Assembly (NCBI GenBank): GCA_964187785.1
Contig: OZ076414.1
Location: 44,764,001 to 44,828,000 of the forward strand
Origin: Amphiscolops sp. MND2022
Taxonomy: Eukaryota
Reading direction: 5' to 3'
Length of the DNA stretch: 64,000 nucleotides
Part shown: positions 2,791-50,401 of the stretch, in pieces
Layout of the letters: the number at the start of each line of letters is the position of its first letter
How positions within the stretch are numbered: position 1 is the stretch's first letter
Made by a program: the position numbers and the translations under genes
Notes under the pieces: model-generated
What the model was told of the DNA's origin: nothing
Database searches by the model: none
What the model saw: the letters and a program-made list of their open reading frames with translations, nothing else

Positions 2791-4282
2791 TGTGATATTC
2801 CTCACCTAGGCTTTCTGCGTCAGACTCTTCGTCTGAGTGTATAGTTACATCTACATCGGATTCACTTCGAAACAAAGGTTTTGCAGGATGTTTCAAGTCT
2901 CTCATTTTAGAAACCTTGGGAGGAAAATTTTCATTTTCAGAATCTGGATTCTCGATATTAGATGCGCGAACTCCTATAGACCCATCTACCCTGGATCCCG
3001 ATTGCTGATTTTCTTGTATTTCATTTATGTCTGATCTTGGGTTTGTTGCTGTTGATGAGCTTTTGTTAGTTTTTATTTCCCTTAGAATTGCTTCTAATTT
3101 GTTATCCATTTCTTCTCGCATCTTTTCAATTCTGTCGTTGCTTTTTTGTTCCATTATTTGAGTCCAAACTTGTATCTCATTGCTAATTTGGCTGGGTTCG
3201 ACCAAGTTGTTCTCAGAGTTATTTTCGCCTAAATTACTTTGAATAACTGTATCATTATTAGTTAAAGTCACATTACCTGATATTGGTGTCTCAGCCTGAG
3301 TTCTCTCTATTTCCCTCTCTGGGGATGGAGTTTCTAGCCTTCTAGATCGTCTACTTCTTTTGTTTCCCATCCTTTCTCAATTGAAAATGAATTGCAGTTA
3401 TTGGGGAAGAATTTGAATTGATCCTTTTATTTGGCAAAACCAAATTGGAAAGAGAAAATGATAGGAAAGATGAAAATTTACAGAAAAGGATTGTAGATTT
3501 TAAAGCGACTGCACTTGAGTAGAATTGGAGAAGTTGTGTATCACCAAGTTATCTTAGCTGTCTATAACAATCATGACATCTCTTTTTACAGGCATCACCC
3601 TTTGGGAAACGTATAAATAGAATTACATCACAATAACATCAGTCTATTTATAGTACAAAGGCCCTGGAAGAATGACAATCAGATACGAAATGATAAGGTC
3701 TAGGAAACCCTAGAAGAAAGTATGGAATTACTTAAGAATGGTATTTGCATGACTAATCAACATTAAGATTCACTACATCATCAATTTGGAGTGCAACACT
3801 GCTAAAAACGCATGTTGACTAGTATACATTATGCATCGAAAAGTATATTACCGCATATAAGCACTTATGCGGAAATGACATATTTTGACGTATAAACACT
3901 TTCACTCGAAACGTATGTTGACGCATGAACGTACTATCTTGAAATGTATGTTACCGCACAATGATCGAGACATATTATTTCCAAAAGAGATTGTGAATCA
4001 CATATTACATAAATCTCAACTTCATGACTCATCAACTTGATTAACGAACATGAAAAACTAAATCTCAATACAATCTAAGATGTATTAAGCCATCTAAAAG
4101 AACAAAATCAACAAAACTAACAACTTTACCCAAAATAACATATTTACATGACATCAATAAAACGGGTGAAAAACAAACATAACATGTCATAAAATCAGTT
4201 GTAAAACTTCAAGTTACTTCCAGTCCTCATTCACTTTTTCAGCGCTGCACTCCGGCTCCCATGCAGGTACTTGGCTGCAACA
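2791..4282 (-). repeat. Element 1 3' LTR (1492 bp)
   Basis: Colinear with 17166-18657; roughly 25-30 substitutions and no indels seen by eye (~98% identity). Starts TGTGAT and ends GCAACA on the plus strand. Confidence 0.97.
3807..3975. repeat. Degenerate ~33-bp array in the LTR (second copy at 18182-18350)
   Basis: Unit TCGAAACGTATGTTGACGCATGAACGTACTATC. The core TCGAAACGTATGTTGACG matches TCGATCCGTATGTTGACG of the 6.1-kb array at 16/18 positions. Confidence 0.7.
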
Positions 4283-5306
4283 GTCCCGCATTTTTAAAGG
4301 TGAATAGGGCTGCTTCAAATCCATCTATGAATGCACGGGAACGTACATTCCGATCACGTACTGTCTCGGCTTCATAGGCTGTTGCAAGAAGATATTCGCC
4401 TAATATTTCAAGGGCTATCTGATCATAAGTTTTACCGCACCAATCGCAGAAACCTGCAATATTAGGCATGACTGTTGGTGATAATCGGTAAACATTTCTT
4501 TCTTCAGCTGGTAGAAATAATATATTTGTACTGTGTGTCGCCTGTACGATGAAGGCTTGTTGTATAAATGGAGGCACTGGTGGGTCGTTGTGAACTGCCA
4601 CAAAGTTAGGTATGATTGATGGAATTTGTATCATCAGTGGTACTGGGTTTGTTAGTTGATTTGGGTTTGTGAGGTGTGAGTTAGCAGCTGCACCAGGAGG
4701 TCTGTTATGAAGATAATCGTTCACATTATTGTGATCAGCTGTTTGGACTTCTGAGATATTGTCTCCCAGGTCGGTAAAGTTACTGATGTCAGCACTAAAG
4801 CCCGGTGGGTAGTTAGGTCGAGGTCTTCGTGGTAATCCTCTGCCCCTGCCCCTTTCTCTCGGGGTAGGAAGAATCGCCGCTGATGGCCTGCCGTAGCTAT
4901 TTAGTGGGGGTTGTTGAGCCATTTCCTGGTCATCCGGAGATTCAGGTGATTCTTCAAATTCCGAACTCACGAATGAAGATGGTGTCATTGAATGATTGCT
5001 CTGGTGTTCATCAATCAGGTCAAGCAATTGTCTTTCTATTTGCGATCCGGCAGTATCTATTATTTCTGTGTCTAACGGCGACGCTGTTGACTGGGGGAAA
5101 AGAGTCATAGCGGCTGCCCCGGCAAATGCAGTCATTGCGTTTGATCCTGGAGCACCCACTCGGAATCTTTCCTCAATTGCATTCACATTCCCGGGTTCAA
5201 CAGTGAACTCTTCTCCACTCTCACTAGAGATATCTATTACAGAAGGCGATGATCCAAAGGTGTCCATCAGATCGTCCAGTCTGAATTGTAGTCTGTCCAT
5301 TCTCAC
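4239..5306 (-). CDS. Element 1 accessory ORF (355 aa, unknown function), terminating inside the 3' LTR
   Basis: Long open frame with an acidic, Pro/Asn-rich N-terminal half and an ordered-looking C-terminal segment (CDWCGKTYDQIALEILGEYLL...RAFIDGFEAALF). The last residues LQPSTCMGAGVQR* are encoded by LTR sequence (4282-4239). ORF 5415-5642 lies in the same frame upstream, separated by two stops. Confidence 0.7.
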   Translation of the reverse strand: MRMDRLQFRLDDLMDTFGSSPSVIDISSESGEEFTVEPGNVNAIEERFRVGAPGSNAMTAFAGAAAMTLFPQSTASPLDTEIIDTAGSQIERQLLDLIDEHQSNHSMTPSSFVSSEFEESPESPDDQEMAQQPPLNSYGRPSAAILPTPRERGRGRGLPRRPRPNYPPGFSADISNFTDLGDNISEVQTADHNNVNDYLHNRPPGAAANSHLTNPNQLTNPVPLMIQIPSIIPNFVAVHNDPPVPPFIQQAFIVQATHSTNILFLPAEERNVYRLSPTVMPNIAGFCDWCGKTYDQIALEILGEYLLATAYEAETVRDRNVRSRAFIDGFEAALFTFKNAGLLQPSTCMGAGVQR

Positions 5307-6061
5307 TTTAGTGTCGGGTTTGTGATGAAAGTAACTTATGTCTTGGATGATAGTTCTTTTGAGAATTATTCAGTGAAGTTTTATGTGAGCAACTGGTTTT
5401 GACTCGGCTATAGACTATATTGTGATTAGTTTATGATTTCCTGGTGAAAAATAAGGAAAACCCGCGGAAAAAATGAGTGTCATGTCAACAATATTCCGCG
5501 ATCCCCTTATAAGGGTTTCCTTTGCTATGAAGCAATGGGTTCCATCATCATCAAGGTGTAAACAAGTCCTTTTAAGGTGATTCTTCAGGGTTTTCCCGCT
5601 AACAGCACCTTCTTTATTCTCTTCACAGCATTTCGTTGTCATTTTAAATGATAAGTAAACAAATCTAATATAACTTCAAGAGAAATTCAACGAATGACTC
5701 AGAAACTTGTCAATGAATATTCTCAATCAATTTTACATTTAACTAAATTTCATGAGTAAAACCAATGGAAATACAAAATGGTATAAAAGGAACATTTATT
5801 AAAGTTTTCATCATTTTTAATGTGTTGTCCTCTTCGTAGTTTTGTTCAAACACAGTCCCGCATTTAAAAGGGTATTAGGGTCTGATCATGAAACGTATAT
5901 TTAAAACAGATGTGTTCCCTTTAAATGAAATGTGACGTCAAAAAGGTTTCATCAAAATCAGTTCAGTTCAATCATCCCATAGTGACGAAACTTTCGTGTA
6001 TTAACGCATGATAGTATGCCATAATACGTTGCTCGTGCTTTCAATATCATCTGTCAATACT

Positions 6062-6245
6062 GCATCTATCTCCTGCTGCATATGTAACTAGAAACGTAGG
6101 TTGCCGCATACTCGTACTCACTCGATCCGTATGTTGACGAGTATGCGTCTTCACTTGATCCGTATGTTGACGAGTATACGTTTTCACTTGATCCGCATGT
6201 TGCCGCATATCCGTCTTTGCTTGATACGCATATTACCGTATATTT
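6062..6245. repeat. Degenerate 33-bp tandem array upstream of the antisense gene
   Basis: Unit CTCGATCCGTATGTTGACGAGTATGCGTCTTCA, about 5 copies. Confidence 0.85.
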
Positions 6246-6711
6246 GTCATAACGCTGCATGTAATTCGTCGTGTATTTGCTTTCCGAAATCTCTCTCGCT
6301 TTCACTGCGTAATTACCATTGTTTGCGCATTTGTCACTCAGATTGTCTCACGTTAATTAATCATACCAAGCACTCTGGCAGTAGTGAATGGCATTTAATT
6401 GACCAATCAGCGATCAGTATAAACTATACCGATTTCCAAAACCAGATTTCATTTTGCTCTTTTGCCTTTAATTGTTACGCTACGCCTTTTGTTTTAATTG
6501 AAATCGTTGAAATTCTGTCCACTGTTAATTTTAAAGGTTGCTGTCTATTAGTTTCAGTCTTCATTGTTTAGTAATCTCTGTTTTTCCTTAATTCATTTCC
6601 TCTCAGCAAATTGAAGTGTACTTCTTGTGTTGTTACCATCATTAAAAATTGTTTTCCTCTCCTGTCGATCGACAATCAAATTATCCCTTCTTGCAATTGG
6701 ATTCATTTATT

Positions 6712-9700
6712 ATGGACTCTCCCAGTCGCCGGAAGACAAGGAAGGATCAGCCCTCTCGTCGGGAAAGTGCTTCTTGGTGCTACAAGAGCCCGTCGGGTAC
6801 TACTCCTGGTTAGTTCAACTCAATTTGTTTCAGATTTTCAATTTTGAAATAAGGTTCGGTGAATTTTGAATGATAATTAGTTGGCCAGACTAATATCAGA
6901 GTTGATCAGATTTTAATCTTGATCAGATTTGAGGAGTTTTTTGAACGCTTCCGTTCTTGGTTTCGAACGACTTCCGTTTTCATTTCCTGTTTTCGTATCC
7001 AAAAACTAGTGATTATCAAACGGGTTCCGTCCATTTGACCCATTTATTTTCTAAAACGGATCATTTGTTTTAGTTGAACTTGGATCGACCCAAACGTCTC
7101 CTGGTCGCTCACCGACGAAGATTTATCATCCTCTTCAAGTTGTTTCCCCTGACGATCAGCAACAGACTGACTGTCCAGATACACCAGATCTTGCTCAGTT
7201 ACAGATTGATGAGGCTAAAAGATCCCCTGTTATTGAAGTACGTGAAATTACTGCACAAGGGACAGAAGTCACCTTGCCTACATTGAATCAACCTCCTTTC
7301 TCTGCTAGTTGTTCGGTACGTCAGATCACCAATCTTGAAGCGGCTGATATGGATCTCACTCCTACTCTTTTTAACCAAGACGCTGTTACTGAGGAGATTG
7401 TCCCATCTTCTTCCCAGGTCCCCTCTCCTCAATTCACCCAGTTCCTAACTTATTCTCAGAACCGGACGCTAGATCCACCCTCGCCTCGAGTCGTAGGCTT
7501 AGATGCTCCCGACCAAGGGCGAATGTGTACCCCACTTAGTGAGAATCTAGAGAACCCCACCATTGATACTCATGCCAATACTGAGCCTTGTGGACTCAGT
7601 GTCACACGACAAGAAGTCATGTTATTATCCAACATGCTCGGTAGGATTCCCCGGAGTTTCCTAGCTGGTGGGGATGAACAAGCAACGTCTCTTCCTTTCA
7701 GCATCGTTGAGAGTCCCTCTAATTATGGCACAGCATTACCTTTAACCTCAAGCCAGGATGAAAGAAACTCACAATCATCACCTGGAAATGCCACGCAGGA
7801 TCCTCAGAACCCTGATCAGTCATCTTTGCGGAAAAGGCAACGACCGAGGTACTCTCTAAAAACTCACATGTTCCACAAACATCCGGTTTTAAAATTCTCT
7901 GCTACTGGACCAATTGATCCAGAGAAAACACCATACAAGTGGTGGTGCCGGGTTTGCCGGTCCGAGCTGTCTCTAATGAGCAGAGGAACGCTTGAATTGA
8001 TGGCACACTACCGCTGTGATAGTCATTACATCAAGAAACATCGAATGAGGATGGAAATCCCCGGAATGGCCCTATTTGACAAGAATGAACAAGAGTTACA
8101 GGGTATGGCTTTGATTGAAGCTAAGAAGGTTGCAAAAAACACTTATCCCATTGCTCCTCAATTGGATAGCTTACGACCTTTGGTGGGACAGCATTCTGTC
8201 CCTGATTTCGGATCATTAACCAGTCCAACTGAAGGAGTTTTGTCCCTAGTCAGCATTCTCGAGTATGGTCTGAAAAATGGTGGACATGTGGACAGTTTGA
8301 CAGGAATTTACGACGGAATCTCTCGTCTATCCAGGAACAATCAGCTGCCTGTTCAAAACTGGGATCAACACCGCATTTATGTAAGCCTCATGTTTAAGTT
8401 TTCAGTTCTGCATATTTCGTTTATAAGGGGTAATTGTTGTTCTGGTTGAAGTGGGGTGGAGATAATTTGCTGAGTTTTAACAAGTTTGGTTTTGAAATTT
8501 TTTCACACTAATCATTGTTTCTATCTGTTCACAGGGAGGCCTGATACACATGTTTCGAGAGCTTATTAACTATTGTGTGACAGCTTGTGCTTCCTCCGGG
8601 ATTTATTCACTATCTCTTGAAAAGACTCCTACCAAAGATCTCCTTATCGTTTCCTTTTGGAGCGGTAACGTCCTACACAGAGTTTGTCTTGGAACAGGAC
8701 CCCGCGGTCTATTAATCCCGAAGAAGATCCTTGGTTTAGTGGCATCGTTCATTACTCTTTTTGAGAGCTCCCCGAACTGTGTGTGTCTTGTCGGAATGGG
8801 GGACAAACTTAACCAATGCCTCACTTCAACCCAACCAGGAATCAAGCGTCCTAATCTGGCTCACTCGTTTGGTCCGAACGATTTCGAGAAATGTCTTGCC
8901 GGCCCCACAGTAAACATTATCGAGCGCCACGACTTCCGGTCTATACTGGATTTCCTCTTAATGAAGCTGCGGACAGCACTTGACCGAGACTGGCTACAGT
9001 CCCTCCCTCTTCTTCATAAGGTTTTCATCCTCTTCTATTTCATTGTAATTATACATTCATAGATAATAATTGTTTTGCTTTGTCTTTTAGTGCGTCTTGA
9101 GTCTCCAGTATTCTCTTAGCGAAGCATCAGGACTTATTGAGTGCCTCTCTTCCAACTGGGACAAGATACGTGATCATTTAGCCCAAGTCTCTAGGCTGCC
9201 GAAGTACCGCTTCCACATGCGAGAGGTTAATTTGAATACCATTTTTAGTAATATACAACTCATCTGCATCGTTTTCATTGTTTTGATTGTTGTTTTAGCC
9301 AAGCACCCTCGACGAATGCTTCAGGCTCGACACAGCATATCTGGCCAGATTGTTTATCATCCGGTGCGCCATTGACCACTGTTAGTATGTTGTTTTGCTG
9401 ATTGATTTCTTATTTCGTACTTTTACATCACTTGCGCGATTTTCTCAGTGCGCCCGAAAATTCCACCATATTTTGACTAATTTGGGTCAGAAATGATCGT
9501 TTTTCAATAATACCAATTTCAATCTACCGTGCACCCCAGCTCTGATCATTGGAGAATACTATTTGACTGTTTCCATTAGCCGTGTTCTTTATTTAAGCTA
9601 CGTGTAGCCTCCATGTCTTTTTATGCACGTAATCTCTCCTTTTCCGCATAGTGACGCATATGCAAGTTGTCTCGATCCGCATGACAACGTATATGCGTAT

Positions 9701-10989
9701 CACCTCGATCCGCACAATAACGCATATGCGGATTACCTCGATTCGCATAACAACGTATATGCGTTTTATCTCGAACTGCATTATAACGTATTATTTCTCT
9801 TTGTCTAATACTAATCTGTGTTTGACCATTACGTCATCGTTATTCAGAGTTGCAATAACGTTGTGTTTCAGATGATTCAGCCTTTTCTGCCATTGAGACA
9901 CAAGCTGGATATGGATTCAGACTGTTCAATCAATACACTGTGTTTCTATATAGTCAACTGCAGAATATCCTTCCCGATAGCTCTATTGGGGCTATAACCG
10001 ACTGGGATAGATACATATCACTTGATTTCACAGATTCTGCTTTGCCATTCAAGTCGCCTGATGAATTTATCCTGAACGAGGATTTCCACAAACTAGTGTT
10101 AGCTAGTAAGTTACCACGTCCCAGCAAGTTTGTGGAACAATCTATTTCCTTTTGCAAAGCCTTTTGCAAAGATTTACTGGACCATGAGCTGGTTCAATCT
10201 AACTTGGCACGAGGCATGGCTGCATTTGATTTAGCAGTGATGGTGGAGGGTCCGGAGACCAATTACGTCAGTGCTATTGAAAAATTGAGCACTCATTTCG
10301 TGTCAACTGGATGGTTATCCCCTAGCGAGAAAGTCAAGGTGGTGAGCCAGTACAGGGCTTTTGTCACTCTGTTGCGTGCCAGTCCTTTGCCCGAGGTCAA
10401 TGATTTAGTCCAATTTCTTGCTACACACTACGAAATGCAAAACAGGCCTGAGTTGTATCAGTTATTCCGTTACTCTTGTCTCTCTTTGCCGAGCAATGTC
10501 AGTTTGCCCACTTCGTTTGAAGTACCCATTGCCCAGTTGGAGTCTGGCAATGAAGTGTTGCGTTCTTGTGTTACAAGTTTACAATTGTCCTACCAGACAG
10601 TACCGAATGTTTCTAATTTGTACCGGGACCCACGTACCATCAATCGTCTGTTTCGACTCTTAGGGAGAGGACCTGAACTGCTTACGGACAAAAAGTTCTC
10701 AGTGTGGAATATCCTCAAAAGCAGTGGGCCCAAACGGAATACCCTTCAGGGGAAATTTGAGGCTGCATATCGCAAAGCAGTGCTCAAAGTGGACAAGCCA
10801 GTAGTGCCTTCTAACACTTCAACCCCTACTGTTAGTCGTTCCAATAGTGGTAGCAGATCTCCAGTTTCTGGTCCTTCTTTGGGACGGGCTATAGTTCCTG
10901 TGTCTCGATGTGCTAACGACAATGAAGAAGAAGGAGGAAGTGTTCCCAAAGGGGCGAAAGTTAAAACTTCTCAAGGGAAGCGAAGTTAA
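6712..10989 (+). CDS. Antisense six-exon gene (~1074 aa): BED-like C2H2 zinc finger plus hAT-transposase-like body
   Basis: Exons 6712-6808, 7074-8380, 8535-9020, 9091-9225, 9299-9380, 9872-10989 total 3225 nt = 1075 codons including the stop. All five introns are GT..AG and phase-compatible (1,0,0,0,1), with no internal stops. An alternative intron 5 (9385-9953) is also in frame. Zinc finger WWCRVC-x16-H-x5-H at 7940-8026. The product family call is motif-based inference. Confidence 0.85.
9640..9790. repeat. Degenerate 33-bp tandem array in intron 5
   Basis: Unit CTCGATCCGCATGACAACGTATATGCGTATCAC, about 4-5 copies, same orientation as the 6062-6245 array. Confidence 0.85.
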
Positions 10990-11168: not shown

Positions 11169-14100
11169 TCAGTATCTGTATGAGTCAGAGTAGTTTGGGT
11201 TGGGATTAGGTCGTAAGTTGTATTTTTCACCACGGGTATTTATGGGATCTTCTTCCAATGGGGTGTTTTGGGAATTTTCTGGGGTTTTCTGAATATCATC
11301 ATCAGTTGAAATATTTGCATCTCTTTGAATTTTTTGCCATCTTTTTGTCATCTTTCTTATTTAGTTGTTGGGGATTTTCATCAGCATGATTTTCCTGGTT
11401 TTGGTCTGGTACAGTGATCTGTTCCACTGGGCTCCCCCCCACTATTTTTTGAAGATTCAGGGGAGGGAGGGCGGCTATTTTCATGTAGTTGAATTGGAAT
11501 ATAATCAGTTTCTTCAGTATTTTGCAGGGAATCTGAAGGACTATCATCAAACGGATTTGAACCAAAGTTCGTGTTCCATGATTGGGCATATAGATCATCA
11601 TTTGCTATAGGCATCTGGTCATCTTTTTGCCAATCGGCTTCACGAACAAAAACATCGGCTAATGGGGCTTGCGGGGTGAATTTCCGCAAACGGATCCTGT
11701 GTAGCAGTTGCGTTTTATTCGTGCCAAGTCTCCGTACAATGTAATTATTGTTAGGGAGCACTTTTTCGACTTTATATGGTCCACCCCATCTGAATTCTCG
11801 AAATGGTATTTTCGTTGCTTGTGTATCAGCTTTTGGATTGAAAATGTAGCAGTAATCTGTTGTTTCAAGCGGAGCTGCTTTTGCTTTTCGGTCATAGTAG
11901 GCCTTGTATTTAAGGTAAGATTGCTTGATGTTCTTTTTGGTTTGGTCTAGAAGAGTCTTCATGCGTTTTTGAATTTCTTCTGCTACATCAGCTTGCGGGT
12001 GGTATTTTGGGTTGGGGTTATATCCAAGTTTATAATCGAGTATATTGTGTGGTATTCTACCATGGAAGACTCGTGAAGGTTCACAGCCGAGTGATGCATA
12101 TTATGTTGTGTTGTGATTAAGGACTGCCAAAGGGAGATATTTATGCCAGTTATTCCTGAATTCGCCTGTTGCGGCTTTGAGGTGTGTTTTGACTGAAGCA
12201 TGAGTTCTCTCAAGGAGTCCTATTGTTTGAGCATGTTTCATCGTTGCGTGTTTGAGTTCAATTCCGAGCACTGCTGCAACTTCAGGCGTTATTTGTGCAT
12301 TGAATTGAGTTCCTAGGTCAGTGATTATTGTTGTTGTGAGGTATGTGTGCTTGCATAGAATGTCCATGATAACCCTGGATACTGCCGTTGCATTACTTTT
12401 TGTGACTTGATAAGCAAATAGATATCTAGAGAAGACATCTATTGCTGTGATAATGTGATCATAGCCTCCACTGGGTGGAAGGTTAGGTAAAATGTCCATC
12501 TGTAGAATGTCTTCTGGGCCAAGATCCCATTCTGGACAATTCAGGAATTCTGTCCTGAGGAGATCATTGTTGATACGTTTTGTTTGGATACAAATTTGGC
12601 AGTTACTGACCCATTTCTTGATGTATTTTGCCATACATGGGTAGTAATATTTCTGTCTGGCTTCTTGTATCATTTTCGTGATACCTGGGTGGTTTGAATT
12701 ATGGCCATGGAGAGCTTGAAGGAATTCATCTAGAAGTTGAATCGGAAGAAGTATTTGGTAATGAGATATTGTTCCAGTATCTGTGTAATATTTTCTGGTG
12801 AGTACCTCTTGTTTGATTTCTATTCTTGTTATATTTTGTAGGTAGTGATGGTATCTGTAGTCTGATGCTAATTGATTTTCGTCGAAGGGGTCACCTTCAA
12901 TTTTGGCTCGTAAATTCCTGAGGACTATGTCGTTATTCTGCTCCAGACGTATTCTTGCATTGTCTCTGAAGTATCCGGATGATACTGCAATTGACCCTGA
13001 TGTGGGTTTGTGAAATTGTTGTAGCTCAGAGACGGTATTTTCTGGTTCATTGTGGGTTTCCGTTTGGGCTTGATTTCGGACGTTTTGCTTTTCTTCCCAG
13101 AGTTGATTTTCGTCTATTTCATCATCTGGGAGGATGTAGATTTGTTCTTCTTCAACAATGCCTGTTGATTGGATATTGACTTCGATTGCTTTCGTGTGGA
13201 TGTCATTACGAATGGTCATCTCTAGTTTTTCAGTTGGGTCGGCTTCTGTTCTAGAAAGGAAGTCGGCAGCTGTATTCATCGATCCAGCGACATGGGCGAT
13301 TACAAAATTATACTGCAAGACGTAATCGCAGGCATTCCAAAGTGCTGGAGGGATCATTTCTGTTTGAAAAAAGCGGGTCACTGAACGGTTGTCTGTAAAC
13401 ACGATTACTGGGAAGGTGCTTCCCCACATGAGGTGTCCAAATTCAACCAATGCAAAGTATTTGGAAAGGAATTCTTTTGCATAAATTGACATTTTTGTTT
13501 GAGTTGGGTTGAAGGTTTTTGAACCAAATGCTATGGGTGCATATGTTTTACGTCTCGATTGGAGTTTTTGGTTCGGGTCGTCTTCAGTCATGATTGCAAA
13601 TCCAGCTGCGGTGAAACTTGCGTCGGACATGACTATGAGTTGTTTGTTCTTCAGTGGTTGTTTGAGCGCTAATTGACAGGAATTTTCCAGGAGTTTGTTA
13701 AGGTTCGCGAAGTCTTCTATTAAGTTTGTTGGTACGTAGAATTTGGATGTTTCTTTGAGAAGTTTGAAGAACGGGGAAAACCGTTCGGAAAGGCGTGGTA
13801 TATATATTTTCGGTAATAGTTCAGGAATCCGATATACCTTTGTAGCGCCTTTTTTGATTTGGGAAATCGGAGTTTTTAGAGGAAATCTTTCACTTTATCG
13901 GCTTGAGGAGCTACTCCTGCGGGTGTGATGGTGCGACCTAGAAAGTCGACTTGTTTAACTCCGAAATGGCATTTGGACATTGAGAGTTTCAGTCCTGCAT
14001 TTCGGATACATTCGAAGACGGTTTTGATGTTTGCACACAATTGTTTTGTATCGTTTGCTGCTATGCCGATGTCATCGACATATTGGGCACATTGGTCAGC

Positions 14101-16065
14101 TTTAATTGCTCTGTCCAGGTATTCTCTCATGAAGCTAGAAAATGCAGAGAGTGATCTGCTGAGTCCCTGGGCGAGGCGACGATAAGCAAATGTTCTGCTT
14201 GCAAAGTTGAAGGCAAGCATCTGGATGGATTGGTAATCTGCCATTTGTAGGCAGTGGTAAGCCTGGGAGCAGTTTAGTTTGCAGAAGAGTCTTTTCCCTG
14301 CCATGTGTTGGGCTGCATCAGATAAAGTGCTTACCGGGTGGTTATTGTTGGTGTAATCTTCCGTGATGAGATTATTGATTTTTCTGAGGTCTACTAATAG
14401 TCTAAGGCGCCCATTCGGTTTGCGTTGTGCAAAAATTGGGCTTGCGTACTTAGAAAATGGTAGGGTTGTAATGATACCATATTTGTGCAGAAGTGCGAGT
14501 TCTACAGTGATATCATCTTTGAGGTTGATAGGAGTTGGCAGACTTTGGCTATAAGCTGGTCTGTCATCGTTTGGTGTAATCTTGACTTTGAACTCACGAT
14601 TAATGCCTATATCGAAACGATGTCTGGCAAAAATATCGTGAAACTCAACGAGGATCTCTTCAATTTCTTGTCGTTCGTCAGGGCTGAGTGTTGTGTCGGA
14701 CCAGTCAAAATTTGAGAGGAATGTTTTCCTGGCTGACTCATTATCATGTGGGTTCAGTTTTTCGAGTTCCTTTAATTCGAGAAGTTCGTCGTATATTCTC
14801 TGTTGAATTGGGGTATAACTAGCTGGGTCACCTGGTTCTTCAGGGGTTGGGAACCAGTATGATTCTTGGTCAGTGTTTGGTTGTGGGACTTTTAGTAGTT
14901 CGTTTATGTTTACTTCTGTTGGTTCTTCATATTTTATCATGAAGTCTAGCAACGCTGGGTCCACTGGTTGGATGTGTTTGATTTGTTCTGGTGTAAGTAT
15001 CTTGAAATCCGCTAAATGGGTGTCAAGGGAAATTGTATATGGTAGGTCAGAAAAATTGATGATTTGATATCCGATAGAATTGTTATTTACAGTGCTAAGT
15101 GATGCTGTGATAAAAATGCTATCATGGTTTTCAAATTGTTGCGATGGTGTTACAATTCCTGTCGCATTATGGTCCATCAGATGGGGCATTTTGCTTGCTA
15201 TGGCAAGTGTTTCTCCTGGTTGTAGGGTGTAGGTATTTTCGGCAAATAATGGTGTTGCTTGACGTATTGCTGTTTGGGTGTCAGGTTTAAGTTGCATTGA
15301 CAGGTAGGGAAAAGTTAAGATGCCTTGGTTGACATCAAAGATTGCATTATTTCTGCGGAGGAAACACAATCCTATTAGCGGGTTTGGTAGATTTTTCATG
15401 ATGATGAAGTTTTCTTTTAAAATGAAATCTGCCACTTCGAATTCTAATAATACTGTACCAATGGGGACTTCTAATTGTCCATTTGCTACCATAATTTGGA
15501 AGTTAGGTGGGGGACCAGTTTCTTTGATTGCTTCATTTGCTAGCAACTTGATTTTATTGAGGTCCTGTTCGGAGATTGCACTTGTAAGGGCTCCGGTATC
15601 GATAAGACCATCAAGTGTAAGATTTTCGAAGTCCATTGGAATGTAGTACATGTGGCGTTTTCGTTTCAATGTCAAAGAAGTTGAGATTGGGAGGTATGAC
15701 AAGTTTCGTTCCTTGTCAAATTGTATATGTTCAGTGAGATCTTCATTTAAAAGAGGTTGTTTTTTATCATTGCAAGAAGTTTTTATCGTTACGTGGTGTT
15801 TTGTTGTGTGTTGGATTTCTGAGTTTGATTCTGTTTCAGGGTTGTTCGTTTGTTGGAGAAAATAGTTGTCTGGAGCATTGTGTAGGAGTTCATATAAGTC
15901 GTCGGGTTGAGTTTCTAGTGTTGATTGTGGCGAATTTTGTGTCGTTAATTGAGTTTCGCAAACTGCTGTTTTTGCAGGTTTTGGGCTTAGCTGATGCTGC
16001 CAGTCATCTGCTAAGTTTTGTTTTTGTGGTGAGTTTGTATAAAGGCGTGGCGATTCTAGTTTAAA
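11169..16065 (-). pseudogene. pol: Element 1 pol: protease, RT, RNase H, integrase (several stops and frameshifts)
   Basis: Protease LIDTGA; RT LRLLVDLRKIN and YVDD; RNase H DASFTAAG; integrase HGHNSNHPG...CQIC and DILPNLP...D core. Stops at 13876 and 12101; frameshifts near 13800, 11430 and 11345. The tail ends KYNLRPNPNPNYSDSYRY* at 11169. Confidence 0.95.
16059..16065 (-). promoter_or_regulatory. -1 ribosomal frameshift heptamer TTTAAAC (gag to pol)
   Basis: The minus strand reads GGA-T TTA AAC TAG: an X XXY YYZ heptamer immediately before the gag stop. The -1 frame (GFKLESPR...) is the open pol frame of ORF 13876-16272. Confidence 0.8.
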
Positions 16066-17147
16066 TCCTTCGACGAGGATTGTTGGTGTCGTTCCAGTTT
16101 TGGTCTGATGGGTTTTTTGGCTTGTTTGTATTCTTCTATGACTTTCTTTTGTGCCTCGGTTAGGGTCCATTTGGTGGACGGTTTTCCATATTGGCACCGA
16201 AGTAACAGTTTTCTTCATCATGTCCGGGGGTTTTGCAATTGTGACATTTTTCAGCATCCGGGTCTTAATCAAGTTTACGCCGTTTTGCTATTTTGGGGCA
16301 GTCCGTCATCATGTGGCCTGTCTCTTTACAGTAACGGCATTGATCATTCTTGAGGGTTTTATCTGGTACTGTTTTTGGGGTTTGTTTTTTATCTTTGTCA
16401 TTTTGTTTTTTGTTGGGTTTTTCAGTGTTTTCTGCTTTTTTGGTAACGGTCATTTGGGTTTTGACAAGGGGTTCGTCTGCCTCAAGACCGTTAAGTTCCA
16501 TCTCTCGTTCAAGATGTTTAACTATTTGATCATACGTTCCATTCTCAAGGTAGGCCTGATTAATGGATTTTTTAAGGTGGGGAGGCATTTTTGCGTAGAG
16601 TAGGTTCTCAATCATTTGGTGGGCGTTCTCCCCAAACGCTTTCTCCCCACAGCACTTTCTTGAAGTTCTTCTAAAAAATCCAAAAGTTTCTGGTTCTCTG
16701 GGTCAAATGAGAGTCTGTGAAATCTGTGTTTTGCAGAAGCGCTAGACTCCGGTTTTACATATTTCCTTCGGAAGACTTTTAGTATGTCTTCTAAGGTTGT
16801 TGTTGGTGTTCTTTGTATGTTTTTAAATGTTTTGAGTGCCAAACCCCCAAGATGGGCGTGAAAATGGTTAATTTTCATGTCCTCTGTTAGGTTTGGTTGC
16901 ATTCGAAGTGTTGTATGAAACAAATCTTCGAAGTATTCAAATTTTTTGTTCTCATTTTTTCCATTGAAGGTGAGTGTATTCTTGGGATGAAATAGCGATT
17001 GTGGGGAGTTTTTGTTTGCCAATTTTTCTATGGCAAGTGCGATCTGGTTAACTGGGTCAAGTGGTTTTGCTGTCAAGATTGACATGTGGTCTGCGTGGGA
17101 TCCAGTTGTGTCATTTAATTTCTGGGAACTTTGTCTATGGAGTTGTC

Positions 17148-17165
17148 GGTTGGCTCCTGTCACCA
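17148..17165 (-). promoter_or_regulatory. Element 1 primer-binding site
   Basis: TGGTGACAGGAGCCAACC abuts the LTR end ...TATCACA. TGG is the complement of tRNA CCA. The primer tRNA is not identified. Confidence 0.8.
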
Positions 17166-18657
17166 TGTGATAATCCTCACCTAGGCTTTCTGCGTCAGAC
17201 TCTTCGTCTGAGTGTATAGTTACATCTACATCGGATTCACTTCGAAACAAAGGTTTTGCAGGATGTTTCAGGTCTCTCATTTTAGAAACCTTGGGAGGAA
17301 AATCTTCATTTTCAGAATCTGGATTCTCGATATTAGATGCGCGAACTCCTATAGACCCATCTACCCTGGATCCCGATTGCTGATTTTCGTGTATTTCATT
17401 TATGTCTGATCTTGGGTTTGTTGCTGTTGATGAGCTTTTGTTAGTTTTTATTTCCCTTAGAATTGCTTCTAATTTGTTATCCATTTCTTCTCGCATCTTT
17501 TCAATTCTGTCGTTGCTTTTTTGTTCCATTATTTGAGTCCAAACTTGTATCTCATTGCTAATTTGGCTGGGTTCGACCAAGTTGTTCTCAGAGTTATTTT
17601 CGCCTAAATTACTTTGAATAACTGTATCATTATTAGTTAAAGTCATATTACCTGATATTGGTGTCTCAGCCTGAGTTCTCTCTATTTCTCTCTCTGGGGA
17701 TGGAGTTTCTAGCCTTCTAGATCGTCTACTTCTTTTGTTTCCCATCCTTTCTCAATTGAAAATGAATTGCAGTTATTGGGGAAGAATTTGAATTGATCCT
17801 TTTATTTGGCAAAACCAAATTGGAAAGAGAAAATGATAGGAAAGATGAAAATTTACAGAAAAGGATTGTAGAATTTAAAGCGACTGCACTTGAGTAGAAT
17901 TGGAGAAGTTGTGTATCACCAAGTTATCCTAACTGTCTATAACAATCATGACATCCCTTTTTACAGGCATCACCCTTTGGGAAACGTATAAATAGAATTA
18001 CATCACAATAACATCAGTCTTTTTTTAGTACAAAGGCCCTGGAGGAATGACAATCAGATACAAATTGATAAGGTCTAGGAAACCCTAGAAGAAAGTATGG
18101 AATTACTTAAGAATGGTATTTGCATGACTAATCAACATTAAGATTCACTACATCATCAATTTGGAGTGCAACACTGCTAAAAACGCATGATGACTAGTAT
18201 ACATTATGCATCGAAACGTATATTACCGCATATAAGCACTTATGCGGAAATGACATAATTTGACGTATAAACACTTTCACTCGAAACGTATGTTGACGCA
18301 TGAACGTACTATCTTGAAATGTATGTTACCGCACAATGATCGAGACATAATATTTCCAAAAGAGATTGTGAATCACATATTACATAAATCTCAACTTCAT
18401 GACTCATCAACTTGATTAACGAACATGAAAAACTGAATCTCAATACAATCTAAGATGTATTAGGCCATCTAAAAGAACAAAATCAACAAAACTAACACAT
18501 TTACCCAAAATAACAAGTTTACATGACATCAATAAAACGGGTGAAAAACAAACATAACATGTCATAAAATCAGTTGTAAAACTTCAAGTTACTTCCAGTC
18601 CTCATTCACCTTTTGAGCGCTGCACTCCGGCTCCCATGCAGGTACTTGGCTGCAACA
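17166..18657 (-). repeat. Element 1 5' LTR (1492 bp)
   Basis: Matches 2791-4282. Followed on the minus strand directly by TGGTGACAGGAGCC and preceded by the TSD GCAAC. Confidence 0.97.
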
Positions 18658-20637
18658 GCAACTTTTACCGAAAACATGGTAGAGAGATCTGTTCTGGGTT
18701 TTGAGAAATTTGCCTCACAAGTTTGAAAAGTTGGCAGATGTCACGAAATCTGTGAAAGAAAAACAACACGCTCGCCCCGAACTGTTCTACAACTAAATAA
18801 AATTGAGGCTCAAGAATAGCCAATGTTTACAAAAACGCTAAGGAGTTCGAAAAAAAAGAAAACTTTGATACATCTTCGCCCATTTTTAGAAGAAACACCT
18901 ATTATAATAATTCTGCGATAGCTGGCCAGTTTTCGTTTTTTCGGCATTATGCGTCTAACCGAGTAAGAGAAATTTTTACCTTTTTTTCGAAACTTTTTGA
19001 TAAAAGTTTGTCGCAATTTTTAGTTTTTGAGGTTTTCTGTAAAGGAAAAAGGCTTCCCGAGTTTTGAGGGTGACCTCTTTGTTACTTTTGATCATATGGA
19101 ATTGATGATGTTTCCCATTGATTGTGGAAAATACCTCATGTCAGTTTTTTCGGGTCAATGCGTCTTTCCGAAATTTTTATTTGGTCGAAGTGTACCCCCT
19201 TGGTTTCATGGCTGATTTCGGCATGAGAAAGGTAGTTTGTGAGCTGAAACTTATTTCGTCATCATAGGACTCTACCTAAAAAAATAAAAAAACGGCTTTT
19301 TGTAATTCCTGTTGGGAAAAAGTGTTTTCCGTATCTCAGGCGTATTTCTTGGGGTATTTGTTGGCACTGAAAAAACGTCGTATGCTTGAAACTAGGTCGT
19401 TTGCAAGTTTAAGAATTTTGAGTGGTCCCAGTGTGTTATATTATTGCACATAGTTCCACCAGAAGTGTTAAAATCTGGAAACAATTTCGACATCTTGGGG
19501 ATCAATTCGCGGAACTTTTCTTACATGAATCTACTGAGGTCTTTTCACAAATTAGCCTACTGGACACCGAGTTTAGTCGTTGTTGAATGCGTAGACTATT
19601 CTAACACGCTCTACTGGCGCGAAACATTCTACTAGGAAGGCGTACTCCATATCTAGTGACTTTGCTTGGAGCTTATTGAATTTTAAATATTTGACGAATA
19701 ATGTCGAAGTTTACATTTTCAAAGAGCGTTCCGGAAAGTTGAGCGATTAAACTTGTCTGGTATCTTTTCGAAACACAATCGGTAGCTACCCTTTTCAACC
19801 CTGAGCCTATGGGTTTCCTTATTGAAGTATATTTTCAGGAAGGGTCCAAAATTGGCGCTATGTTGTCAAAAAATGAGAAAAGTCGGAAATTTCGACACCT
19901 TTAAGGTTAACTCGACGAACTTCTTCCTACCTTTTTTATAACTTGCACTTAGAATACTATATTGTTTCAACGCTCGGGTCAATGAAAGTTTTATTCTACA
20001 AAAAGTTTCCTGGTTTGAACAAAAATTGTAAATAATTTGTCTGAGGCCAATTCCAACAAAAAATAGAAAATAGCAATGATATTTTCAAAAATGCCTAAAG
20101 GATGCCAGGATTAGCCAATGTTGAGCCTTTAAAACCTTTTTTTGCAAGCAAGTAGCCTAAAAATGTACAAAAAGCGGCCTAAAAAGTGAAAAAATCAAAA
20201 TTCTCAGTTTTGCATTATTTGGGTCTTTTGGAGGAAACTCTCCGCCATTAAATCTTTATAATTTTCTTTTAAAAACATGCTGTGGATCTTTTTTAATCAT
20301 CTGGAGTTCTTTCAAGCATTTATCCAACCGATACATATCTCGAATAAAAATTCATTAAAAATATCCGATATTGGCAAAACTTTGACATTTTTGACTTTTT
20401 GCGGTCAATTTTGAGCCATTTTGCAACCAAAGTCTGCAAATATTTCTTTGAAAGCCGAGAGAGCTATAAGTTCAATTTTTGATGAACGTTTGCCATCATT
20501 CAGACTCCAAAACAATTCAAAAAGTAGGGATAGCTTGTGAAAAAACGAAGATGTTGAAGTTCTTTTGATTCAACGCTGTAACGTTATATTCAAAAAATGT
20601 ATTGCAAAGCTCGTTCTTTCGTTGTTGATTGTCATTA

Positions 20638-23520: not shown

Positions 23521-25079
23521 GGTCATTCTGGGGTCCTTGGAGTCAACTAAAAAAGTCCAGAATTCTCCACAGATAGATATCGCACGAAGCTAAATTTATG
23601 TGAGTTGAATTCTATGGGTAACACCCTTAAAGTTAAATATGAATTTGGTGCTTGGCAAATTTTGTAAAAAAAACTTGTTTGATTTAAATATTTTCATTTC
23701 CCAAATATGAAATATGGGCGGAAAATAACAAAACTCGACCATATGGGCACCTTGCATTGATCGAGCCCCAATCCGATGAGATTAGAGATATGCTCGATGC
23801 ACAGATATATAAAGCAATTAACTCTGCAAAAAAAGGAGAGGGTGATTCGAAAAGTACTACCACAATTGGCACGATAAAGAATATCACTTTTGAAAGTGGG
23901 GATAATAGATCCATGGGACTGGGACAAAAACTCTAAATGGTTAGTACGAAAAGAAGTACAGGTCTTGGTCTGATTAGAACGCAAGCTTCCTCCGTACTCA
24001 GAGACTTGGAGTTTTTGAGCCAAGGCAAAACCACGGCATTAGTTCAAGGAATGTCTTCTCACTGACTTCATGCTCCAACCACTACGAACAAAAGTACTAC
24101 GTGTGTCTTTGAATGACAAATTCCAACGTGTCAATGACTACCTTGCTCGATAACATCATGATATTGAAGGAAAAGTTCAAGCTTTAAATCGCAGTATGAC
24201 ATAATAACTCAGTAAAACCTAATACAGTTCATGTTTGTCTGCACATTTCACGTTAACAGTAAATGGAAAACAAGAGGAGCAGTAATTTTGCGAAATTTTA
24301 AAATCAGCAAACTTTTTTTTGGAATCAGACACCTCTGAGCCCCATTTGTTTGACAAAAAAGCAACGGAAAAGTTTAATCTTGATGAGATTTTACCGTATG
24401 CTTTCGCCAACAATTAGGCTCAGCCAGTACAGTGGCAGGAGATCGAAGGAGAACGTAATAGATATATAGAATCCGTCAGTTCGCATTTCCTTCAAAACAA
24501 CTTCTATAGTCTGCGATTTCTAACTAAAGTGTCAACTAAAATTGAATCGAAATAAGTGCTATTGAGGCTGTTACCGGGTACATTTGCAGGTTGTTTTCTT
24601 TTCGGAAAACTGGTCCAATGTGAAGACTTCGAATATTAGTTACTACTCACATGGAGTTCCATCATAACCTAACTTTAGAACTTCTCAAATTCGAGTATCT
24701 TCACTACGCTGACATCTTCTTTGAGAAAAAAATGATCATAATGAAATATCGCATGCGAAGAACTTAATCTTGTACAAACTAGTCACTTTCTGATTTGTAT
24801 ATTTTCGACAAGGGAGCCAAAGCTGTGCAAGGACAATGATTCTCGGAAAATAGCAAAAAAATTACACGTGTATTTCAACTGCTGATGAAGATGAAGATAA
24901 GGAATATGGTTTCCCCCTTCTTTTTCGTTTAGTGTTTTTCATCCACTCGCTAATCTCTGACTTGTTATTTTCCGCTCACATAAATGGGGAATGAAAATTA
25001 TGATCTGTGTTGCGTTTGTTTCCAAATTCTGCCAAAACTCCACTTTTATTTACTCCATTTAGTAGAACGATATATTAGT

Positions 25080-25512
25080 TGAGCTGTTTAAGATTAGTTG
25101 GATGTTAAACTTTAGATCTTTCAAGGAACACCTAAGAAGTCTATCTTAACAGCAAATCGTCTAAGTCAAGAAGGTAGCTTTTACTATTTCACTTTCTCTG
25201 AGATCTCAGTTAGGTCCTGTCTAAGGGAAGACTGTTCAGTAGATCAGATTTTAATTTTCTCCGAGTATATACCTTCTACAAATTCATCAACGATTATATT
25301 GATTAAAAGCAGTGCTAATCATTCTAGAGTGACAGTAGTAAGATTAGAAATACTAATAAAGTTTTTCACCAAAAGTTAGTACGATATTAATGATGTTATC
25401 AGCAAATGTAAGAAATCTAATTGTCTTCAAAATGGATTGACATCTGTCGCTATAAAAGTTAGTACTTTTCAAGAAAAGATGAATACTTGAGGACATGAAT
25501 CATGGCATCACA
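25080..25512 (-). repeat. Element 2 3' LTR (~433 bp)
   Basis: Colinear with 50402-50833; visibly more diverged than the element 1 LTR pair (several percent by eye). Confidence 0.9.
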
Positions 25513-26105
25513 ATCAACCAGGAATTTTTGAAAATTAAAATTATATATTTGCATTTCAGAAGTTAGGATGTCTAGAGTTTTTAGTTTCAGATGTTGTATG
25601 CATGAGTTTTGTTCTAGAAGTGTACCATACTTAGGTAGTGAGAACTAACTATGACGATGTAGCTTCTTATGTGAGTGACAGTTGAAATTGGTGCAAAAGT
25701 CAATACGATACATATGCCGCAAAAGTAGAATTTATCATCAAGAATAAAGTGTATTTTCTGTAAAACGAGAACGAACCGTGTTCTAGTCAAAAAGTGCATC
25801 GTGTTCATCGCGAATTGTAATGCACAGTGTAAGCAGAAATTGCGGATTGTGATCATTGAGCGTAAAAAGAGAGAAAAGTGGAAACCAGTAAAGAATTGTG
25901 GTATACACCGCGAGTAAGAATGACTCTAAACGATGCTTCCATTCGTGTGTGAAGTGGAAACCAGTCAACGTACGTAATTGTAGAGCGTGTAAAGTACTCA
26001 TTTACTGCATTTTGATCAATACGCGTAACGCCAAATCATACAGTGTAACGAGCAAAACACGTAACGCGTACTTGAAATGTTAACGCGTTTTTATTGGCTG
26101 TTAAC

Positions 26106-26131
26106 CGAACTAGCAAGATCTTGCTAGTTCG
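26106..26131. repeat. Perfect 26-bp palindrome in the element 2 3' non-coding region
   Basis: CGAACTAGCAAGA|TCTTGCTAGTTCG. Confidence 0.95.
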
Positions 26132-35900: not shown

Positions 35901-35978
35901 GTTCATTGGGCCAAGATTCGTCAGATTGTTCTGTATTTGAGTTAGGATGTCGAGCGTCTAATTCGCATTTGAAAGAGT
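32955..35978 (-). pseudogene. pol: Element 2 RT, RNase H and integrase (left of the BEL insertion)
   Basis: FALVYIDD; FIGALNYY; RELLGIVHAL...VFTDHKP; KFGPP..LVTDRGSE; KFKPLRIGP. Heavily frameshifted. Confidence 0.9.
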
Positions 35979-36913
35979 TGTAACAGCTGCTTGCCCTTAT
36001 CCTGCGCTGAGGCTTGACAAACTTGGTCGCCCTGGTCCGTTGCTTATTACTGTGGACCGTTACTGAACAATTCCTGGTTTTCTTGTGTTAAAGGACTGTA
36101 TTTTGTGGCTGGTGGTGCCGATGTGACCCGTGGAAACTCCTAGGATCCACCTTTGCACTTGTTTGGATCCGATGTGATCCGTAACACACTTCCCTCACTG
36201 TATCTCCACGCGCTCCGGCTCCCCAACATTGAGAGTAGCTACTTAGTCGCTCTAACACTAGCGAAAAGTTGTGAAGATTGAGAAGTTGATTAATTAGTCT
36301 CTTGGTTCTAAGACCCAACTTGCCTATAGCTATTTAGTCGTAAAAATCTCCATCTAATAACGATATAAATACCGTTTACAATTCTTTGGTAAATATAAGC
36401 AAATAGAAGTAAGTATAAATAAATGACATTTAAAGCATAATATGAGGTTATTGACTAAGAAAACAAACTATGTGGTGGTTTTGGCATGTTGGTAGGTGGG
36501 CTAGAAAGTATGTTTACAAAATGAAAATATCATTAATTTCAACAGAGTTACCTTTCCTTCAAGGTCATATGAGAAAATCACATAATAATTAATACATCAA
36601 AAGTGGGTAAGTCTTGAGGTCCGACCTAAGTCACTTTGGGTGTTAATTGCTCGGAACCCAGGAGAGATACGGGGCAGGGTGGTTCGAGTGAAAGTTGAGT
36701 TAGCACCTCTAGTATATGCATGCTAAGTTTCAGGGTGACTGAAGGAGTGCTTCTCAAAAAGGAGGCTGGCGTTTTTTACAGGATGCCATTTTTGCTGAAA
36801 GTTGTAATTTTCCAACTAGAATCTTGAGAAACTTTCTAGGAGTTTCGAGTTCTAAGTTTCATCAGTCACGTTCAAATTTGAGTTTCTGATCTTGCAATGC
36901 ACTGGCGACAACA
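35979..36913 (-). repeat. BEL 3' LTR (935 bp)
   Basis: Homologous to 43833-44766. Purine-rich GGGAGAAAAACAGAGCCGGCGA immediately precedes it on the minus strand (PPT). Confidence 0.9.
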
Positions 36914-43470: not shown

Positions 43471-43504
43471 CTCTTCACTTTGGTCTGAATTTAGTTCCCA
43501 AAGT

Positions 43505-43722: not shown

Positions 43723-43832
43723 GAGACTCCAAGTTCGAGACAATAGTTCTTCTTGGGCAATCTGTTCAGTTGTCCACCAACGAGACATCTTCGTCCTCGT
43801 CTACTTTTTCTTGTCCGGGTCGGCAGACCAAA

Positions 43833-46030: not shown

Positions 46031-46032
46031 TG

Positions 46033-50399: not shown

Positions 50400-50401
50400 A
50401 T

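Follow-up and report, generated by a model that had tools for sequence, protein, structure and literature searches.

A five-intron gene for a predicted zinc-finger protein lies antisense to gag-pol in a lineage of Ty3/gypsy retrotransposons

The 64,000-nt stretch of DNA analyzed here (the window; Amphiscolops sp. MND2022, contig OZ076414.1, positions 44,764,001 to 44,828,000) contains a Ty3/gypsy LTR retrotransposon that reads on the minus strand. Its two 1492-bp LTRs, the 3' LTR at 2791-4282 and the 5' LTR at 17166-18657, have TG...CA ends and are 98.2% identical over 1493 aligned bases, and the element is bounded by a 5-bp target-site duplication, GCAAC, at 2786-2790 and 18658-18662. A TGG-initiated primer-binding site (TGGTGACAGGAGCCAACC on the element strand) lies at 17148-17165, and a polypurine-tract-like sequence at 4283-4300, whose reverse complement ends in AAAAATGCGGGA, lies next to the 3' LTR; a similar 19-mer recurs at 5855-5873. 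The minus strand encodes gag at 16059-17745, starting inside the 5' LTR, and pol at about 11172-15897, with protease followed by Pfam matches to RVT_1, RT_RNaseH, Integrase_H2C2 and rve in that order. The Ty3 capsid-like gag has Ty3_capsid, Retrotrans_gag and zf-CCHC hits, of which only the zf-CCHC hit passes the Pfam cut-off. Both genes are broken in this copy, with pol showing frame changes near 13850 and 11430 relative to the intact pol of a closely related element, L002 (related loci are designated here by L numbers). A further sense-strand accessory ORF, ORF3, occupies 4239-5306 on the minus strand. Searches of the window for tRNAs and Rfam families and Pfam scans of its other ORFs returned no hits.

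Between ORF3 and pol lies a gene on the plus strand, tail-to-tail with pol and with only about 180 bp between the two stop codons. Its six exons, at 6712-6808, 7074-8380, 8535-9020, 9091-9225, 9299-9380 and 9872-10989, are separated by five introns with GT...AG borders and pyrimidine-rich acceptors, and when joined they give 3225 nt, or 1074 codons plus a single terminal stop. A spliced-alignment program written for this work recovered the same model. The introns carry stops or shift the frame: the ORF of exon 2 ends at 8449, and four of the five intron lengths (265, 154, 70, 73 and 491 nt) are not multiples of 3, so the frame is open only after splicing. Exon 1 carries the start codon and residues 1-33 and ends in a phase-1 donor. 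An open 3.2-kb frame across five precisely placed GT-AG pairs is far beyond chance, and the original prediction of an intact, intron-containing gene antisense to gag-pol, between pol and the 3' LTR, holds exactly.

The N-terminal third of the deduced protein, largely within exon 2, is rich in S, P, T and Q and poorly conserved; the first 285 residues are almost unconserved. It is followed by a basic patch, LRKRQRPR (7826-7849), and by a zinc-finger motif at 7940-8041 of the form WW-C-x2-C-x16-H-x5-H(-x4-H), with Cys codons at 7946 and 7955 and His codons at 8006 and 8024, and then by a helical linker. Both the S/P-rich N-terminus and the C-x2-C-x16-H-x5-H motif had been part of the original prediction. 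Among 57 homologues, W36, C37, C40 and H57 of the finger are invariant and H63 and H68 are at least 90% conserved; the spacing is kept in the remote homologues L009 and L008, and this is the most conserved 50-residue stretch of the protein. AlphaFold2 models were made for exon 3 and exon 6 separately. Exon 3, folded as an isolated exon and with only moderate confidence (pLDDT 68), is predicted to have the order alpha-b1-b2-b3-alpha-b4-alpha (b1-b2-b3-a1-b4 at 8604-8792), which fits an RNase-H-like core. Exon 6 is predicted to form an all-helical domain of roughly 300 residues (about 9901-10785; pLDDT 86-98 for residues 10-200 of the model), followed by an S/P-rich basic tail that is disordered over residues 305-371.

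Two arrays of 33-bp tandem repeats accompany the gene. One, with a CCG[CT]ATA-type core, lies at 6093-6257, about 0.5 kb upstream of the start codon, in what is a candidate promoter/enhancer region, and the other, of the same unit type, lies at 9643-9807 inside intron 5. The motif is also enriched on the plus strand upstream of the gene in L001, L006 and L007, and arrays or motif clusters lie in the long intron of L001, L002, L003, L005, L006 and L007. They occur on the plus strand only and never in exons.

The gene is not peculiar to this copy. Plus-strand ORFs resembling exons 2, 3 and 6, followed by minus-strand pol, are found in L001, L002, L003, L005, L006, L007 and L009, while L008 ends in a pol fragment on the same side; all told, the layout is the same in the eight related loci long enough to judge. 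All five introns are at the same codon and phase, with GT-AG borders, in L001, L002 and L007, as are introns 2-5 in L003 and L006, and the position and phase of the first intron are also conserved in L005. Protein identity in these comparisons is 33-54%, and intron lengths vary from 67 to 668 nt. The association persists in elements whose pol is only 51-64% identical. Database homologues are numerous, with 129 clusters for exon 3 and 83 for exon 6 (more than 100 clusters at 90% identity exist), but every one of them is an exon-sized ORF from unannotated assemblies. An exhaustive profile search of 1.84 billion representatives with exon 6 gave 348 hits, of which the 150 best were all exon-sized ORFs of at most 419 residues, with no annotated full-length protein among them. 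Scans of the JGI metagenome contigs found no relatives. Five ORFs that seemed to span exon junctions (P0219, P0094, P0109, P0141 and P0143) proved to be intron read-throughs rather than intron losses; read-through ORFs lose all similarity exactly inside the predicted introns. A sixth, P0361 from L010, belongs to a degenerate copy, and its apparent junction-spanning match is unreliable.

Whether sibling copies carry the gene at the same position, and under what selection, had been named in advance as a test of the prediction, and the answer to both parts is favorable. Against L002, a sibling about 95% identical, dN is 0.024 and dS 0.186, for a dN/dS of 0.13; exon and intron nucleotide identity are equal (94.4% against 93.8%), and there are no frame-breaking indels in exons. 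In deeper pairs pN of 0.31-0.49 is below pS of about 0.8, and the full coding sequence has no stop in 6 of the 7 copies in the codon alignment.

The further proposal, that the protein derives from a hAT-type DNA transposase and was repurposed by the retrotransposon, is only partly supported. The segment of exon 3 that had been described as an RNase-H-like first strand does fall within the predicted core, and the best weak Foldseek matches of that model are RNase-H-like folds, including 12 Hermes chains that give the longest alignments (100-107 columns, TM 0.35, probability up to 0.94, E 0.03). That said, the best E-values were 0.016-0.03 and none reached 0.001. The expected catalytic Asp had been thought replaced, and at the end of b1 the residue is indeed Gln in 54, Glu in 10 and Asp in only 2 of 80 family members; after b4 the position is acidic in 68 of 80, and the third residue could not be placed. 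The finger scores only 10 bits against the zf-BED model (PF02892), where the cut-off is 20.6, only 5 of 57 members match it at E <= 10, and ZNF451-type, zf-met and KIN17 C2H2 models score similarly. The claimed C-terminal resemblance to hAT dimerization domains fails: none of 63 exon-6 homologues hits PF05699 at E <= 10, and the confident exon-6 model finds neither Hermes nor anything else in the PDB (best E 0.9, TM about 0.1), nor any match among viral predicted structures. No Pfam family was found at E <= 1 for any exon of the window gene, and scans of 200 family members at E <= 10 gave only sub-threshold C2H2/BED hits. Profile searches of all PDB sequences with the exon-2C, exon-3 and exon-6 alignments, and with the contiguous L009 ORF, found nothing meaningful, while a combined exon-2C plus exon-3 alignment anchored on P0219 was misaligned by MAFFT and discarded. 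Descent from a DNA transposase therefore remains a hypothesis. An origin from the element's own HHCC-DDE integrase was rejected, as hhalign gave a probability of 0.2% for both exon 3 and the finger region against the integrase alignment.

The best explanation of these data is that the gene is an integral accessory gene of a Ty3/gypsy lineage, encoded on the strand opposite to gag-pol. The analysis itself establishes the gene model, its placement inside the element, its presence at the same place in diverged relatives, the conserved intron positions and the purifying selection on the protein, and we are highly confident that this is a selectively maintained, element-borne, spliced protein-coding gene. 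It is an established principle that such an element replicates through an RNA that is the complement of this gene's pre-mRNA; the five introns are therefore not recognized in the genomic RNA and are copied faithfully at each retrotransposition. What follows is inferred from sequence and predicted structure. The gene would be transcribed from an internal promoter in the 1.4 kb between ORF3 and exon 1, which holds the upstream repeat array, and its transcript then spliced, though no promoter or poly(A) signal was identified in the sequence. The product would be a nuclear, non-catalytic nucleic-acid-binding factor with a disordered, fast-evolving N-terminal third, an NLS-like basic patch, the conserved finger, an RNase-H-like core without the first catalytic Asp, and a large helical domain. 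With no sequence-level homology to any characterized protein in the searches made, this function rests on fold-level hints, and we regard a non-enzymatic nucleic-acid-binding regulator as about as likely as not. The protein would act in trans on copies of its own family, most likely in transcriptional control or protection from silencing, or alternatively in targeting, and possibly through the CCG[CT]ATA arrays that every subfamily keeps upstream of the gene and in its long intron, a link that rests on co-occurrence only and is tentative. Because gag and pol are broken in this copy, an intact gene here need not mean current activity. Taken as a whole, this explanation is somewhat more likely than not.

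Among the alternatives, the one that remains most plausible, although we consider it less likely, is that the product is a counter-defense or host-interaction factor, such as a suppressor of small-RNA or chromatin silencing, rather than a sequence-specific regulator of the element's own arrays. Its fast evolution would then reflect an arms race with the host: non-synonymous divergence is about 5-8 times that of pol over the same history (pN 0.31 against 0.04-0.07, with pS near saturation in both), the N-terminal region is almost unconserved, and the convergent arrangement with pol would make double-stranded RNA that an element might need to manage. However, the finger and core are well conserved, which suits a fixed nucleic-acid target, and no similarity to any known silencing suppressor was found. 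A role in integration targeting or tethering, already suggested in the original prediction, is unlikely on present evidence; a catalytically dead transposase-like protein with a DNA-binding-type finger could bring the pre-integration complex to particular chromatin or sequences, but the structural link to transposases is not significant, there is no similarity to the element's integrase that would suggest a partnership, and the insertion-site evidence is limited to one 5-bp duplication. A bolder and doubtful reading, which the data do not rule out, joins several of these elements: a whole clade of Ty3/gypsy retrotransposons would have permanently recruited a catalytically dead, hAT-like DNA-transposase relative, with a CCHH/BED-like finger and an RNase-H-like core, as an intron-bearing antisense accessory gene, whose product recognizes the short-motif repeat arrays carried by the same element and so gives it its own sequence-specific regulator or tether, with the introns persisting only because the element replicates through the complementary strand. 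If the transposase ancestry were confirmed, a class I element would be shown to have domesticated a class II protein for its own use.

The remaining possibilities are much weaker. Capture of cellular sequences by LTR elements is documented (PMC7264820), and the gene has ordinary spliceosomal introns like a host gene, so that a host gene transduced once in antisense orientation and carried without benefit might be considered. A useless 4.3-kb passenger would decay, however, whereas this gene is retained at the same place across the divergence of pol, with the open frames and low dN/dS described above, and transduced genes are typically confined to one or a few copies (PMC7264820), against more than 100 clusters at 90% identity here; this idea is largely refuted. 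Non-coding antisense transcripts are known for micropia and other elements (PMC7264820), and the gene converges closely on pol, but a 1074-codon frame kept open across saturated synonymous divergence, the dN/dS and the conserved intron phases cannot be explained without translation, which refutes antisense RNA as the sole explanation while leaving an added RNA-level role possible. A nested hAT-type transposon, for which a BED-like finger and an RNase-H-like core might speak, is refuted by the sibling copies; only short, scattered inverted matches were found, no terminal inverted repeats or 8-bp duplication bracket 6712-10989, catalytic positions are not conserved, and no hAT dimerization domain was detected.

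The closest known counterparts are the antisense additional ORFs between pol and the 3' LTR (aORF-3R) of plant Tat/Retand-lineage Ty3/gypsy elements, including the Retand TRP28 proteins, maize Grande gene23 and rice RIRE2, and of fungal Boty (PMC11963269, PMC7264820). These share with the present gene a position in a long pol-to-3'-LTR region, the antisense orientation, presence in essentially all copies of the family, tandem-repeat arrays in the same region, and a product predicted to bind DNA or to be nuclear, with a regulatory role that is suspected but unproven; the Grande product is nuclear and the gene has its own promoter. There is no sequence relationship, as neither the Transposase_28 domain of TRP28 (PF04195) nor any other Pfam family was hit, with no PF04195 hit among 200 family members scanned at E <= 10. 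The present gene has five spliceosomal introns at conserved positions, whereas neither paper mentions introns in such ORFs, and its protein is much larger, with a CCHH finger and a predicted RNase-H-like core; in addition, the sense-strand ORF3 follows it. Searches of an incomplete literature collection found no description of an intron-containing antisense gene in an LTR retrotransposon.

Antisense genes are also found in deltaretroviruses (HTLV-1 HBZ) and in HIV-1 (ASP), where a protein is likewise encoded opposite to gag-pol-env of a reverse-transcribing element. HBZ has a spliced form, is nuclear and acts as a regulator, but it is a small bZIP protein whose promoter and first exon lie in the 3' LTR (the HTLV antisense promoter is cited in PMC7264820), while the present gene starts about 2.4 kb inside the element, has five introns and shows no bZIP or other known domain. 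With hAT transposases such as Hermes, and with hAT-derived BED-finger proteins of the ZBED type, the gene shares an order of parts, namely an N-terminal CCHH finger, a helical region, a predicted RNase-H-like b1-b2-b3-a1-b4 core and a large all-helical region, but no significant structural or sequence match.

Antisense accessory ORFs of LTR retrotransposons are known mainly from plants, and their functions have yet to be established. Several features make the question easier to approach here: a large, multi-exon gene whose intron positions have been kept through many rounds of reverse transcription, a natural demonstration that antisense introns are immune to splicing of the genomic RNA; a protein that is clearly under selection yet evolves several times faster than pol; a highly conserved zinc-finger motif; and candidate cis-arrays within the same element. 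The case also shows that annotation pipelines that mask such elements, or call only ORFs, miss spliced genes inside them.

The element's other accessory frame, ORF3, encodes 355 residues with no Pfam hit. It is 97% identical to the L002 copy and is a conserved ORF in L001, L002 and L006, with pN of 0.14-0.38 below pS of 0.66-0.77.

The plus strand between 6712 and 10989 holds six exons, at 6712-6808, 7074-8380, 8535-9020, 9091-9225, 9299-9380 and 9872-10989. Each of the five intervening introns starts with GT and ends with a pyrimidine-rich stretch followed by AG. Joined, the exons give 3225 nt, which is 1074 codons with one terminal stop, and a spliced protein-to-DNA alignment written independently for this analysis returned the same borders. 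The unspliced sequence, by contrast, is closed, with the ORFs ending inside the introns. The observation that formed the core of the original prediction, an intact, intron-containing gene lying antisense within an LTR retrotransposon, was borne out.

The carrier of this gene is an LTR retrotransposon that reads on the minus strand. Its LTRs, at 2791-4282 and 17166-18657, are 1492 bp long, 98.2% identical and bounded by TG...CA ends. The 5-bp duplication GCAAC lies on both sides, and a TGG-initiated primer-binding site and a purine tract lie next to the LTRs. The minus strand encodes a Ty3-capsid-like gag along with protease, RT, RNase H and integrase, so this is a Ty3/gypsy element. On the element strand the order is 5' LTR, gag, pol, the antisense gene, a repeat array, a sense ORF3, the polypurine tract (PPT) and the 3' LTR. 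The gag reading frame begins about 580 nt inside the LTR, and each LTR (17166-17745 and 2792-3370, minus strand) thus carries the first roughly 190 codons of gag. The PPT-adjacent 19-mer next to the 3' LTR (4283-4301) recurs at 84% identity 1.6 kb further in, at 5855-5873, just beyond the start of ORF3, and may represent either a second polypurine tract or a relic of an internal duplication.

ORF3 itself (4239-5306, minus strand) is a second accessory ORF of 355 aa, sense to gag-pol, that lies between the antisense gene and the 3' LTR and ends about 40 nt inside the LTR. It has no Pfam hit and no obvious membrane segment, but it is conserved in sibling elements with pN below pS. Both ORF3 and the 3.2-kb antisense coding sequence are unbroken in this copy, while gag and pol change frame at least four times relative to the intact sibling locus L002, near 16651, 16190, 13850 and 11430. 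This contrast could reflect chance, assembly error or selection.

Homologues of exon 6, of exon 3 and of the finger-containing part of exon 2 form 83, 129 and 100 clusters, respectively, at 90% identity. Nearly all of them come from one unannotated assembly, ENA ERZ25074608, and single clusters hold up to 58 members. Eight related loci were long enough to judge the surroundings of the gene, spanning 22-96% protein identity to the window. In seven of these (L001, L002, L003, L005, L006, L007 and L009) the plus-strand exon-like ORFs are followed by minus-strand pol, and the eighth, L008, is a contig that ends in a pol fragment on that same side. Two of the eight, L008 and L009, come from another sample, and their pol is only 51-64% identical to the pol of this family. 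These remote homologues (L009 822-2144 and 2773-3963; L008 7593-11260) are just 22-24% identical in protein, yet they keep both the finger spacing and the antisense position. They have fewer introns, and the finger-to-core region is one ORF in L009. No inverted repeats bracket the gene in the window. Two alternative readings, a nested hAT insertion and a one-off capture, are excluded by these findings.

The evidence for splicing and selection comes from sequence comparison alone. In L001, L002 and L007 all five introns, and in L003 and L006 introns 2-5, sit at the same codon and phase (aa 33 phase 1, 468 phase 0, 630 phase 0, 675 phase 0 and 703 phase 1), in every case with GT-AG borders. This positional conservation holds even though protein identity to the window is 33-54% for all of these loci except L002, and though intron lengths range from 67 to 668 nt. 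The joined coding sequence has no stop in the window or in L001, L002, L005, L006 and L007. In some copies an intron is a stop-free multiple of three, as at 11444-11584 of L006, and ORF callers then report longer "proteins" that contain translated intron, starting with Val (GTN) and often ending with Gln (CAG). Five such database ORFs (P0219, P0094, P0109, P0141 and P0143) were recognized, and where these ORFs read through an in-frame intron, their similarity to the window protein stops and resumes exactly at the predicted borders.

Against L002, exons and introns are equally diverged in nucleotides (94.4% and 93.8% identity, respectively), but the exon changes are mostly synonymous, with dN 0.024, dS 0.186 and dN/dS 0.13 over 1069 codons. 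Between subfamilies, synonymous sites are near saturation in all genes, while pN is 0.04-0.07 for pol, 0.09-0.13 for gag, 0.31 for the antisense gene and 0.14-0.38 for ORF3. The antisense gene is constrained, but it evolves several times faster than pol.

The encoded protein was analysed exon by exon rather than as a spliced whole. Residues 1-285 are S/P/T/Q-rich and almost unconserved. A basic patch (LRKRQRPR) precedes the finger, W-W-C-x2-C-x16-H-x5-H, whose Cys and first His are invariant in 57 homologues and whose spacing is kept even in L008 and L009. This finger is the best-conserved stretch of the protein. Exon 3 was folded with 80 homologues, giving a model of only moderate confidence (pLDDT 68), and the predicted order of helix, three long antiparallel-type strands, helix, strand and helix is the RNase-H-like order. 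A Foldseek search of the PDB with this model gave no hit at E <= 0.001. The top 50 matches are nevertheless dominated by RNase-H-like folds, including Cas12 RuvC, sugar kinases, MMLV RT, Argonaute PIWI and an intasome. Twelve chains of Hermes, a hAT transposase, give the longest alignments (100-107 columns, TM 0.35, E from 0.03, probability up to 0.94). The residue at the end of strand 1, where such enzymes have the first catalytic Asp, is Gln in 54 of 80 members, whereas the position after strand 4 is acidic in 68 of 80.

Exon 6 was folded with 63 homologues (pLDDT 86-98 over residues 10-200) and is predicted to form an all-helical domain followed by a disordered tail. This model matches nothing in the PDB or in viral predicted structures. 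Indeed, no Pfam family and no PDB sequence is matched by any exon, by the family profiles or by the remote homologues, the only exception being sub-threshold C2H2/BED hits to the finger. An origin from the element's own integrase was also considered, but the protein is unrelated to that integrase.

A 33-bp tandem repeat with a CCG[CT]ATA-type core occurs twice in the window, 0.5 kb upstream of the start codon (6093-6257) and inside the long intron 5 (9643-9807). Related arrays sharing this core are present in L001 (6054-6267 and 9687-9874), in L007 (5949-6271) and, with a 38-bp unit, in L003 (9396-9486). In the sibling loci the motif is several-fold enriched, almost only on the gene's strand, in these same two places and never in exons, even across subfamilies that are only about 50% identical in protein. 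In L003 it lies in whichever intron is the long one. The single long intron of L009 carries a different array, a 56-bp x 6.7 tandem repeat with an AATGTGCCGG core. These arrays may be regulatory sites, perhaps for the encoded protein, but that link is inference only.

The best-supported reading is that of an element-encoded, spliced, antisense accessory gene whose product would be a nuclear, non-catalytic, nucleic-acid-binding factor serving the retrotransposon. The open spliced frame, its place within the element, the conserved intron positions and the purifying selection are all shown by the sequences themselves, while splicing of an actual transcript and the location and activity of the product are inferred. 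The interpretation offered in the original prediction, that the protein derives from a DNA transposase, is only partly supported. It remains a live but unproven hypothesis, since the core may be hAT-like but the hAT-specific hallmarks that were tested were not found.

The closest known counterparts are the antisense ORFs between pol and the 3' LTR of plant Retand/Tat-lineage elements and of fungal Boty, which are likewise universal within their families, accompanied by tandem repeats, predicted to bind DNA, and of unknown function (PMC11963269, PMC7264820). The gene described here differs in having five conserved introns, in combining the finger with a predicted RNase-H-like architecture, in showing no sequence relationship to TRP28, and in being accompanied by a companion sense ORF3. 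The host also appears to be something other than a plant, as indicated by short introns of 67-83 nt with TTTYAG acceptors.

Elsewhere in the window, direct repeats at 25079-25512 and 50401-50833 lie 25.3 kb apart and are possibly the LTRs of a very large element. The ORFs in this region have no Pfam hits. The repeats enclose a block of about 991-bp tandem repeats (40333-44183), and there are long stretches, at 26000-36000 and 44000-50000, of strong positive GC skew.
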